From Orbicella franksi (taxonomy: Eukaryota): a stretch of 64,000 nucleotides of DNA. The DNA lies in the NCBI GenBank assembly GCA_964199315.1, contig OZ116710.1, positions 1,116,001 through 1,180,000 of the forward strand, in the 5' to 3' direction. The stretch's first letter is position 1; each line of letters begins with the position of its first letter. A program made the translations under genes and the position numbers. This document shows, one piece after another, positions 40,901 through 43,900 of this stretch. The notes under the pieces are model-generated. The model saw only the letters and a list, made by a program, of their open reading frames with translations, had not been told where the DNA came from and did no database searches.

Positions 40901-43900
40901 CTCCACTCTTCCTCTTCAGTCATTTATTGTTTTCATTGTATTAATATTAGTATTAGTATAGTTTTTTAGCAGTGTCCCTTAATTAGTATGGTGTATTATT
41001 TCCAGGCTATAAGGTTTTTGACACTTTAATAAAGTTCTCTCTCACTCACTCACTCACTCACATTCCTGTTTGTACTGCGTGCTGGTTTTCAAAGAAAAGG
41101 TTGGTACATCAAGACTATCCTCCTCCTCGTCAAATAAGTAAAAGCGCACGATAGTGAGGACACCGAAAGCACAAGCATAAGCAGAACAAACGTTTCTGTT
41201 CTTCTTGTGCTTATACATACGTCAAGTGAGAACGCCCTGCTGTAAACATAGCATAAGCAAAAGTCCGCAGTCTCGTTTTAAGTACTGTTCGAGGAGGTAT
41301 AGAACCGAAAATAAAGCAATTGCCCATTCTGCGCTTGCCTACGTGCTAATGCCGTGAGCCTCCCCACTACCGTAATGCCCTTGTTTGTGTTTGTGCTGAT
41401 GTCGTAATTGAAAACCAGGCTTTACGAACGAGCCTTTCCAAGAATTTGGAGTCCGAGTCGTATATATTTTTAAAGTTGGCGTTAATTTGCTGAAGCCACA
41501 GTTAGCCTAATTTAGCGTACTACATGGATATTAAATCCGATCGTAAAGTGCAAGTAAAGTGAAGAAAACTGTTAAAAATTTTACTTGTTGTCATGTGTTT
41601 TCTTTTATTGTGTTATTATAGTAGTAGATGATGGGTCTGACAAGTACCCGGCAAGATGTTGCCGCCTCGGCGGCAAATATTTTGTCAGTATTTGTCAGAC
41701 CCATCATCTACTACCGAGGGCGCGCGCCGCAAGCAAGCCGTCTGATGTCGCACAACCCATTTGAACACTTGCCTACCCTGGAAATAAGATGTATATTGCG
41801 CTGCACGCCAAACGGTTTATCAAGATGGCCCCTCCAAAGCGCGGTAAAAAGCCCCCGTTTATTGCTTATCAAAATGAGATCGTGTAGATGTATCATCGCG
41901 CGAGAGGGTGGAAGAGGGGTTTGAAGATGAAAAGAAAGGTAGGAGGTTTATAAGATGGACCTTTGCCAGGAGGTTGGGCTTCAATAACAATCCTGCTATC
42001 ATGGAAAAGTTTAGGCAACGCGTCCACTCGGCGTTCTATATTCGTTACATCTATGCCTGTTAGATTTGAAACGCCGATCAATTATCAATTTCCTAGCAAC
42101 TTCCTACTGATTTATTATCAGTTATTATTCAAGCCAAGTACGTGATTTCAAAATCAGAGCTTTCATGAAATCGTGATTTCCACACGTATGTAATAGTTCT
42201 AGAACTTTTGCCGCTAGGAAGTTGTCTTTATTGTGGGCGCCACGTTTCCCTAGTTTTTTCACGCAGGATAGGTAATACAAGACTACGCGCAACTTCTTTA
42301 AGTCAGAGATTGTTAGTGAAGTTACATCGCTACCGTGCTACGATCAGAGGATCCAAGTTACCGCTATTTCAAGTGTATTTCGCTGTCTCTCTGCTACCTT
42401 TTGGTGCGAGTCGTCAACCAAAGTACATAAGTTCTTATTGTTGTAGTTATATGCTAAGTCGCGAATTGTTAGTCTTTTCTTTGTCACGAAAAGGTTTCAT
42501 TTAGTTTATCTGTGTTGGGGTTGAAATCGCTTTCACAGCTCTACTATTGCTAAGGCTTATCGTCAAGTTACTATATTAGTCCAGTTGTTATATGATTACC
42601 AAATTGTGATTCTTTCACGCTATATTTAGCTATTTTGCGCGATAGCCGTTGATGTCTTCGTTTGCTTCGACAACAGTTGTTATCGTCTCAGTTTTATTAG
42701 TTTCAAGTATCAATTGTCACGTCTATTTGTTTCACGCTGTGATCTTGTTAGTTTATTATGATTATTCTATCCTGTTAGATTTTTATTTTATGCCTTATCT
42801 AAGTAGGACGTATTCTTAACTATCGCTTTTCAGTTCGAACCTACTACATCTACGTGTACGACTACTACTCCTATTCGTATCTGCTACCACTAGCGATCTA
42901 CTGGTTTTCAACAACTTTTTTGCTCAACAACTTTGCAGCCGGGTGCTTCATCAATACCATCAAGTGGATACCCGTCTGCATTATGAGAAGGATGGCGCTG
43001 CTCCGGGGAACTGAAATCGATATGTTTCGTTGTGATTAGTACCGTGTTGGCTACCATGAGCAGCCACCCACATCTCAACGCAAGACTTTCGACAAGGGTG
43101 GATAACTCTTTGGTGATGACGTAATCTTTTTTGAGATCATTCTGGAGAGCTTCAACTTCTTTAATCGGCACAAACGTCCCAACCGCCCTTGTGTACAACG
43201 AGAGAAAGCTATCAACAAATGTTTCAGTGGTCTTGGCGCCCACATAAGTCTCGTACCTTTTGTAGTACTTTTCAACATCTTTAGCTTCCAAGCGCGTAAC
43301 TTGCTCCTGTGTCAGCTGCACGCCGATGGCTTCTTTTGCTTTGCTTGTAGAAACCAGAATTGTAAGCTCTTCATGGAGGGCTGGAATGTCAGGCCCTCGC
43401 AGACTCAACGAATCGGTCAGCGAATGACTCTTCGTGTAAGGTTCAGCTTCCAGAAGGCTCGTGGCTTCAGCCATCACAGGATCATTTCCTTCAGCCATCG
43501 TATATATTGTAATTTTATTCTTTCAATTCAATTGCGAAAGAGTGGCGAAGAGAGAACACCAGGTAAGAGAATTTGCGCTCTTTCAGCGTTGCAATCAGCT
43601 GCTTGAGGTCATCTTGGGAGAGCTCGCCCGCGTATTCTTTGAAGATGGCCTTCGTGGCCTTGGCCGAAGGGTTGTGAAACAACACGAGCCCTGCCACATT
43701 TTCACGGAAAGGCTTCGCGATGCTGGTGAGCTGCTGAGTCAGCATCCACACGCTGATGTTCGCGTGGCGGGCAGAAAAGCCAAGGTTGACAAGCTCGCCA
43801 GTCCGCCCTTTCACGTCTTTGGAGACCGCGCAGTCATCAAGGACTATAAGGGTGTTGGCCCCTTCAAAACACCAGCTCGCCGCCTTCAACCAAAGCTCCA

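Follow-up and report, generated by a model that had tools for sequence, protein, structure and literature searches.

The element and its two ends

Positions 41620–54284 of the stretch of DNA analysed here (64,000 nucleotides of contig OZ116710.1, positions 1,116,001 to 1,180,000, referred to throughout as the window) are occupied by a copy of a Polinton, or Maverick, with the 5-bp target-site duplication ATTAT on either side. This particular copy is dead, internally deleted and non-autonomous, and what makes it worth discussing is the form of its ends: the outer part of each terminal inverted repeat (TIR) is a long palindrome that can fold into a hairpin, and palindromes of the same kind recur at the ends of many relatives. 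It will be argued here that the tip palindrome is an inherited and selected part of the ends of this family, in which it is the ability of the strand to fold back upon itself that is conserved, and not the sequence. The features that define the two ends are as follows, bit scores being those to a covariance model of the A-type hairpin, one of two types that are introduced in the next section.

41615–41619, no strand: left target-site duplication, ATTAT, the identical five bases being found at both ends
41620–41785, + strand: left TIR, defined by alignment and made up of the palindrome and a non-palindromic inner stretch of about 70 nt
41620–41715, + strand: left terminal palindrome, the hairpin-forming tip of the TIR, 96 nt with a single CTCG in its loop (78.4 bits)
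54090–54284, − strand: right TIR, defined by alignment to the left TIR
54156–54284, − strand: right terminal palindrome, the hairpin-forming tip of the TIR, 129 nt (119.6 bits)
54285–54289, no strand: right target-site duplication, ATTAT, identical to the five bases of the left flank

The two TIR arms, about 166 and about 200 nt in length, are 87–91% identical to one another. An earlier note on the window, written from the letters alone, had described each terminus as a palindrome in its own right, and this description holds good to within 1 nt at either end; folding of the tips as single-stranded DNA (ssDNA), which that note had proposed as a check, gives −36.5 kcal/mol for the left tip (z −12.6) and −43.3 kcal/mol for the right (z −11.4), and at neither end did any of 200 dinucleotide shuffles fold equally well. 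The left stem has the arms GATGATGGG/CCCATCATC and the right stem the arms GATGAAGGG/CCCTTCATC. The loops do indeed differ between the ends, as had also been noticed, the single CTCG on the left being matched on the right by a period-5 array of eight copies (54200–54237) that reads nCTCG on the strand running from the outside inwards. Arrays of this pentamer, in variable copy number, are also seen in the loops of window-like hairpins at L002:9837–9960 and L061:1202–1322 (designations of this form refer to individual loci among the relatives); in the window copy the number is one unit at the left end and eight at the right.

Since the left hairpin and the flank beside it are found again in an independent assembly (locus L082), the palindromes are not artefacts of assembly, and relatives in other assemblies have the same architecture. 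L082 is an ENA metagenome contig that represents the same insertion: around L082:3300–3395 the flank is identical to that of the left end in the window, the hairpin differs by a few substitutions and a fragment of the packaging ATPase gene is 93% identical. Given that this insertion is common to the window and L082, it must be old.

A further claim of the earlier note, that the two ends of the window copy differ by compensatory base pairs specific to each end, has to be read with more caution. The compensated difference (T:A against A:T) is present in the sequence, but taken alone it carries no statistical weight. Comparison of the 38 stem pairs anchored at the ends shows 8 differences in the outer arm and 6 in the inner; by chance 1.26 pairs would then be expected to differ on both sides, and 2 do, one of them compensated. 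No compensation is seen for any of the remaining differences, and the pairs that still pair number 28 of 38 on the left and 34 of 38 on the right. A single compensated pair within so decayed a copy is within chance, and decay after insertion, together with chance alone, is probably all that is needed to account for it, although L082 already has the left-end state, so that the change is older than the split between these two and could predate the insertion.

Between the TIRs, the following genes and inserts are found.

41790–42060, + strand: broken N-terminal remnant of a gene for protein-primed DNA polymerase B (pPolB), at the place where the homologues in L002 and L024 match
42908–43498, − strand: conserved open reading frame (ORF) of 196 aa, with syntenic homologues in 13 loci
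43518–44101, − strand: A32/FtsK-type packaging ATPase gene with one frameshift (Pox_A32, E 5.5e-6)
44140–45382, − strand: probable major capsid protein gene, by synteny, broken in four or more places (two in-frame stops, two frameshifts)
46502–47738, + strand: conserved small ORFs, including coiled-coil ORFs, recognised by their conservation among relatives
47801–48000, no strand: run of N, 200 nt (assembly gap or mask), inside the element
48345–50903, + strand: nested, 5′-truncated fragment of a non-LTR retrotransposon (LINE), with RVT_1 at E 7e-26
50906–51985, − strand: conserved gene of about 360 aa with one in-frame stop and 921 relatives
52278–53152, + strand: conserved small genes, the outermost conserved ones at the right end, recognised by their conservation among relatives

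All 117 stop-free pieces in the six reading frames of the element were scanned against Pfam, and the only matches were to the Pox_A32 packaging ATPase and to reverse transcriptase; DNA_pol_B_2, rve integrase, adenain-like protease and telomere resolvase domains were not detected in these pieces, and Rfam gave no match within the element. The hallmarks of a Polinton that this copy does display are its TIRs, its short target duplication and its A32-type ATPase, for which there are 1204 relatives, the majority with PF04665. Assignment of the capsid gene is based on synteny with an intact 419-aa ORF beside the ATPase in L083 and L084, this ORF itself having a weak match to Capsid_N (E 0.024). The edges of the LINE fragment are marked by homology to L002, which ends at 48344 and restarts at 50904, a few bases being common to both junctions. 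For the 360-aa gene, no relative was found among the IMG/VR viral contigs; this gene, the small genes, the probable capsid and ATPase genes and the 196-aa ORF are all syntenic with a large family of relatives. As to decay, the copy has one frameshift in the ATPase gene, at least two in-frame stops and two frameshifts in the capsid gene, one in-frame stop in the 360-aa gene, one nested insertion and one N gap, while the polymerase has largely been deleted (a short, broken N-terminal remnant is left) and the integrase is absent. Two other runs of N occur in the window in addition to the one inside the element (5601–5800 and 35087–35350, the three being of 200–264 nt), and its longest ORF (15101–16612, − strand, 503 aa) lies outside the element.

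Relatives and their hairpin tips

Relatives were collected as loci from JGI and ENA assemblies. The JGI set Ga0126343 is a Cyphastrea coral metagenome (bioRxiv 10.1101/391565), and the coral origin of the relatives goes back to this one paper; judging from this source, the host of the family is likely to be a stony coral. Three relatives look intact and lie on long contigs, with lengths of 15.3–16.1 kb (L083, 2480–18321; L084, 2727–17984; L085, 3137–19213). Each of these has palindromes at both ends, a capsid–ATPase block and an rve integrase, the last of which is found also in L001, L012, L031 and L035, and matches to pPolB occur in all three as well as in L012, which has the same termini. 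The polymerase is 1231–1248 aa long in L083 and L084 and split in L085 (782 aa plus fragments); that of L083 matches PF03175 (DNA_pol_B_2) with 52.9 bits against a cut-off of 25.8. The TIRs of the three are 178–229 nt long, and their 5-bp target duplications read ACTAG, AAAAT and CAAAC respectively, a length of 5 bp being seen in all four of the complete copies (these three and that in the window). The family to which the window copy belongs is a true Polinton family, abundant in stony-coral sequence.

Using a palindrome scan followed by a check of homology between loci, 22 ends (from 15 loci and the window) were found to have a long palindrome exactly at the syntenic terminus, all of them far removed from their shuffles (z −7.4 to −26.4); two more are partial, the L012 contig stopping inside the hairpin and L013 being without the outer arm. 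A-type termini begin AGTAGTA (window copy, L002, L006, L034, L035, L061, L082, L083), and C-type termini begin ACACACAT (L001, L019, L020, L023, L029, L075, L076, L084, L085). Across the family the tip palindromes span 95–190 nt of the outer part of each TIR, and at both ends they start exactly at the terminal nucleotide adjoining the target duplication. The two types have a design in common, in which an outer stem of about 27 bp (unbroken in young copies) is followed by an asymmetric interruption and then by a more variable inner stem; the asymmetry faces the same way at each end, and the loops of both types usually contain CTCG-type motifs. The first bases of all ends are short reiterations, either (AGT)2-3 or (AC)3-4. 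Covariance models built for both types detected no further ends in the 562 kb of collected sequence, save the partial L012 and L013, and in L034 a more distant neighbouring Polinton (pPolB 40% identical) has no palindrome near its polymerase end, though this copy may be truncated.

For the lineage of L002, L024 and L031, the idea of a replicon of another kind, using an unknown replication protein of about 500 aa instead of pPolB, was considered and is ruled out, as this protein family corresponds to residues 4–443 of the L083 pPolB (62% identity). Because the protein of the window copy's own lineage is in this way the N-terminus of pPolB, the window element and L002 are, to judge from their sequences, internally deleted derivatives of an ordinary pPolB Polinton. 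The N-terminal regions of A-type and C-type pPolBs are divergent from one another. In the C-type, a domain of the T4 endonuclease VII family (Endonuclease_7) lies just upstream of the polymerase domain, scoring 24.5–30.3 bits against a Pfam cut-off of 23.6; the genes concerned, as identified by Pfam, are as follows.

L084:14048–17794, − strand: C-type pPolB with Endonuclease_7
L085:15939–18287, − strand: C-type pPolB with Endonuclease_7
L012:12864–13850, − strand: C-type pPolB with Endonuclease_7

Given that these elements have palindromic ends, the fusion of a structure-specific nuclease to their polymerase may be more than coincidence. Pfam did not detect Endonuclease_7 in the A-type pPolB of L083. 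For the N-terminal region of about 445 aa in A-type pPolBs (P0277 and its relatives) there is no Pfam family and no sequence match in the PDB; the AlphaFold model is poor (pLDDT 59.5) and Foldseek gave no match to it at E <0.01, a weak, non-significant match to an OTU-like fold being no evidence for such a fold. There is also a weak C2H2 zinc-finger signal in this region.

Some other observations on these loci may be useful to those working with similar sequences. Contigs in short-read metagenomes often break off within the hairpin or TIR, or slightly inwards of it (e.g. L012:1–71 and L051:1–269, with many more loci behaving similarly). Other long palindromes, unrelated to Polinton ends, occur at L009:7643–7823, L070:3–274, L001:12719–12887, L034:5886–6102, L083:2107–2207, L084:18897–19050 and L084:20324–20405; some of these unrelated coral palindromes have tRNA-like cores, they resemble foldback or MITE-type repeats, and they form a background for any palindrome scan. 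Just outside the right hairpin of L083 (L083:18388–18789) there is an ORF for a tyrosine recombinase (Phage_integrase), probably belonging to a neighbouring mobile element, while L084:2–1038 is a second C-type Polinton end (a pPolB N-terminus and a hairpin at 906–1038) 1.7 kb to the left of the intact element, so that these elements cluster.

Arm covariation and a fixed orientation

Covariation between the arms was sought across copies by aligning whole hairpins and counting pairs on the structure supported by most members, a check that the earlier note had itself suggested, and the outcome is strong for both types. Among the cells of the A-type alignment, 92.1% are paired, and 23 of the 40 pairs have changed on both sides; the double-changed cells number 47, as against 12.7±2.8 in shuffles (none of 500 reaching the observed count). 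For the C-type, 97.4% of cells pair, with changes on both sides in 12 of 27 pairs, and the 35 double-changed cells compare with 11.8±2.7 in shuffles (again 0 of 500). When the partner position is slid, these counts fall to 6–11 in the A-type and 1–7 in the C-type, a control that is somewhat generous to the structures, these having been derived from the same sequences, but which still leaves a large margin. One-sided changes are confined to 9 cells in the A-type and a single cell in the C-type. Complementarity, and not sequence, is what the family keeps; and since the arms change together and one-sided changes are rare, that complementarity is actively maintained, whether by selection or by templated correction.

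Orientation provides a separate line of evidence. Both in hairpin transfer of the type seen in adeno-associated virus (AAV) and in closed hairpin telomeres of the poxvirus type, the hairpin is inverted at each round, so that any asymmetric features then appear both ways round (“flip” and “flop”). In making the comparison, each end was read 5′ to 3′ starting at its outer side, and gene synteny, rather than the motif, decided the orientation (in the case of L084:906–1038, the adjacent pPolB N-terminus did so). Over the 22 ends read in this way, CTCG occurs 36 times and CGAG twice; taking the loops one end at a time, CTCG predominates at 14 and CGAG at none, the other 8 giving no information. Within each of L083, L084 and L085, the left hairpin differs from the right by 1 nt when the two are compared in the same orientation, whereas if one is flipped there are, in that order, 26 mismatches, 7 mismatches with 2 gap columns, and 7 mismatches with 14 gap columns. 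Similarly, the interruption at position 28–29 of the A-type stem is, wherever seen, a C·A mismatch with the C on the outer arm, and it is never flipped. Pairwise alignments favour the same orientation in 43 of 45 cases for the A-type and 48 of 66 for the C-type, the C-type exceptions having small margins and involving either the near-symmetric L019, L023 and L029 or the decayed L075; the two ends of the window copy are too decayed to be oriented (11 versus 14 mismatches). The orientation of the hairpin is fixed and there is no flip/flop. Loops in both orientations had been among the things that the earlier note suggested looking for, in connection with rolling-hairpin replication or hairpin transfer; what was found, one orientation in 14 of 14 informative ends and agreement between left and right in three intact copies, disfavours both.

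A proposed fold-back at the tip and its known counterparts

In the earlier note the palindromes had been taken as a sign that replication is not of the purely protein-primed kind, but this is not supported by comparison with the relatives, as intact carriers of the same tips encode pPolB and rve and their ends have reiterations typical of protein priming. Protein-primed systems use such short terminal reiterations to recover the end information after internal initiation (PMC5175343). Given that pPolB is present in the intact carriers, that no Rep nickase was detected, that the orientation is locked and that the ends carry reiterations of 2–3 nt, protein priming has probably been retained, and the hairpin tips would then coexist with it and not replace it. 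The reading that we prefer, at a rough probability of 0.45, is that the tip palindrome is a selected single-strand fold-back that serves protein-primed replication.

As to when and on which molecule the palindrome would fold, and what might bind it, we infer the following as the most likely course. Protein priming would start replication at a duplex end and displace one strand, whereupon the 3′ tip of the displaced strand could fold back, its inner arm standing in for the missing complementary strand and rebuilding a duplex copy of the terminal origin of about 27 bp. The fold-back would in this case be a local version of a panhandle of the adenovirus type, substituting for the pairing of two distant TIRs; alternatively, the folded tip may be where the priming complex docks, as in Streptomyces telomeres. 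A fold of this kind would permit the second strand to be initiated, and the inner arm might also serve to repair the tip; the hairpin, if copied faithfully as ordinary sequence, would never invert.

There are several points that weigh against this. The scarcity of one-sided changes fits templated correction from arm to arm as well as it fits selection, and a folded 3′ tip is a perfect self-primer, so that structure taken alone is compatible with fold-back priming. The orientation is ill-defined at the few C-type ends with near-symmetric loops (L019, L023 and L029), where some pairwise scores slightly favour the flipped arrangement. Five loci that reach the expected position have no hairpin there (L017, L024, L038, L045 and L077), although these may be truncated or divergent copies, and the copies available are all integrated ones: among the collected loci no contig starts or stops exactly at a terminus, giving no hint of free linear forms. 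To our knowledge, moreover, no Polinton has ever been seen replicating, and no replication intermediate has been directly evidenced.

If the palindromes do not act as a fold-back of the single strand, they could act in the duplex, either as two inverted binding sites for a protein (the integrase, the terminal protein or the polymerase) or as a cruciform for a structure-specific nuclease in excision or end processing. This is possible, if rather unlikely. In its favour, short motifs conserved within subfamilies occur twice, in inverted orientation (GGGTTCTG in the C-type; GTCTGACAAATAC in the ends of the window copy, with variants in other A-type ends), target duplications of the integrase type are present in all elements, and the Endonuclease_7 domain of C-type pPolBs, just before the polymerase domain, scores above the Pfam cut-off. 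However, beyond the short motifs the stems of different copies are wholly different and yet complementary over 40–80 pairs, which points to base pairing, and Endonuclease_7 was not detected in the A-type pPolB, whose hairpins are equally good.

It is less likely still that the palindromes have no function, having arisen repeatedly as by-products when a strand-displacing polymerase snapped back or switched template, or from a small foldback element nested at the ends, with arms that look “compensated” simply because they were copied recently; we regard this as improbable. Accidental annealing is listed as an alternative for similar structures in a 2026 preprint on Halocafeteria (10.64898/2026.07.28.741278), coral loci are rich in unrelated long palindromes and foldback repeats, and the arms of young copies are nearly perfect. 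Against this, two subfamilies whose terminal sequences are unrelated, and whose pPolBs diverge at the N-terminus, have the same architecture, which argues for old inheritance under constraint; the outer stem of about 27 bp, the asymmetry that faces one way and the CTCG-type loops in a single orientation are common to both; and at both ends the palindromes begin exactly at the terminal nucleotide beside the target duplication.

A more elaborate proposal would be a hybrid end mechanism: protein-primed synthesis in animal Polintons may strictly require a terminal fold-back locked in one orientation, and the endonuclease-VII-like domain that one subfamily has on its polymerase may cut or proofread the hairpin or cruciform. 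Such a mechanism has to be regarded as a long shot, but if true it would constitute a new way of maintaining and processing the ends of a linear genome, undescribed for virus-like elements of eukaryotes with double-stranded DNA (dsDNA), and it would explain why half-changed pairs are almost absent from arms that remain complementary.

Rolling-hairpin replication or hairpin transfer of the parvovirus kind, or closed telomeres of the poxvirus kind, in which a 3′ hairpin primes, nicking and copying resolve the end and the arms template one another, is very unlikely here: a palindromic tip followed by a non-palindromic inner TIR does resemble a homotelomeric parvovirus end, the arms co-vary with almost no one-sided changes, and hairpin priming has been proposed for the terminal palindromes of protist virophages and Polinton-like viruses (10.64898/2026.07.28.741278), but the CTCG loops, the left and right ends of the intact copies and the C·A interruption are all locked in one orientation, no Rep/HUH nickase domain was detected in the 117 six-frame pieces of the window element (Pfam) or in the gene and Pfam lists of L083, L084 and L085, pPolB is present instead, the terminal reiterations are typical of protein priming, and the palindrome is present, whole and unfolded, at both ends of the integrated copies, within target duplications, fitting an open duplex as the substrate. 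Of the suggestion in the earlier note that each hairpin is copied or corrected within one molecule, what stands is that each end is self-complementary and that its arms co-vary, while the particular routes it named (rolling-hairpin replication, hairpin transfer and covalently closed ends) are left unsupported.

Among known systems, the target duplication usually quoted for Polintons is of 6 bp, and the textbook model for their replication, itself an inference, combines protein priming with a “racket” formed from the two TIRs. Polintons in general (polintoviruses, adintovirus-like elements and those in the stony-coral catalogue, PMC11131425) are alike to the intact coral relatives in TIRs, short target duplications, pPolB, rve, A32-type ATPase and capsid gene, and A-type coral termini have the familiar AG...CT; the coral family differs in its 5-bp duplication and in the palindromic outer 95–190 nt of its TIRs, and the window copy in being without polymerase and integrase. 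Neither the coral polintovirus survey (PMC11131425) nor the adintovirus paper (PMC8502044) mentions hairpins or palindromes.

The closest parallel within the same virus supergroup is that in the Halocafeteria preprint of July 2026 (10.64898/2026.07.28.741278), where palindromes of about 52 nt are described at the extremities of TIRs, beside the target duplications, in virophages and one Polinton-like virus, mostly in elements with replication genes other than pPolB, and for which hairpin priming is proposed. Position and integration by rve are alike in the two cases, but the coral palindromes are longer (95–190 nt), they belong to animal Polintons with pPolB, and their covariation and orientation have been measured. 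The preferential link of tip palindromes to non-pPolB genes is not found in the coral family, the intact carriers of which encode pPolB, and the orientation test speaks against the hairpin-priming model, at least in coral Polintons.

The hairpins of parvoviruses also consist of self-complementary termini within inverted terminal repeats (ITRs), have mismatches and bulges in the stem and have a non-palindromic stretch inside the palindrome; the coral elements differ from them in having no flip/flop, no Rep/NS1 nickase, a gene set of 15 kb of the dsDNA type with pPolB, and insertion of the integrase type. Similarly, compared with covalently closed telomeres (of the poxvirus, African swine fever virus (ASFV) or N15 type), the coral elements are without flip/flop and without a resolvase domain, and carry the whole unfolded palindrome at both integrated ends. 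In protein-primed linear replicons, including the panhandle of adenovirus, it is two distant ends that are paired, and we know of no such replicon with a long palindrome at each tip; the role proposed for the coral fold-back is nevertheless the same as that of the panhandle. Adenovirus, phi29-like phages and tectiviruses are alike to the coral elements in pPolB, inverted terminal repeats and short terminal reiterations (PMC5175343), while it is stated of the Polinton-derived ITRs of bidnaviruses that they form no hairpins (PMC4061559).

The precedent for the favoured reading comes from the telomeres of linear Streptomyces replicons, where priming by a terminal protein depends on folded terminal palindromes on the single-stranded 3′ end, and where a comparison has been drawn with parvovirus ends (PMC4513846). 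The likeness lies in the combination of terminal-protein priming with terminal fold-back palindromes; the differences are that the Streptomyces system is bacterial, has several packed palindromes as opposed to one at each coral end, uses an internal origin with patching of the ends, and employs Tap and Tpg, domains of which type were not detected in the six-frame pieces of the window element or in a Pfam scan of the relatives' proteins. Set beside these systems, the coral family extends a recent observation on protist virophages to animal Polintons that use pPolB, with a quantitative test of covariation and of orientation added to it; and it is the fixed orientation that separates the two ideas, as self-priming with flip/flop predicts mixed orientations and a fold-back serving protein priming does not. 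Few virus-like elements of animals are as widespread as Polintons, and a hairpin-forming tip, strongly selected throughout an abundant coral family that includes intact-looking copies with polymerase and integrase, adds a concrete cis element to the model of their replication. On the practical side, palindromic tips break short-read assemblies and are missed by TIR finders that require long, well-separated repeats.

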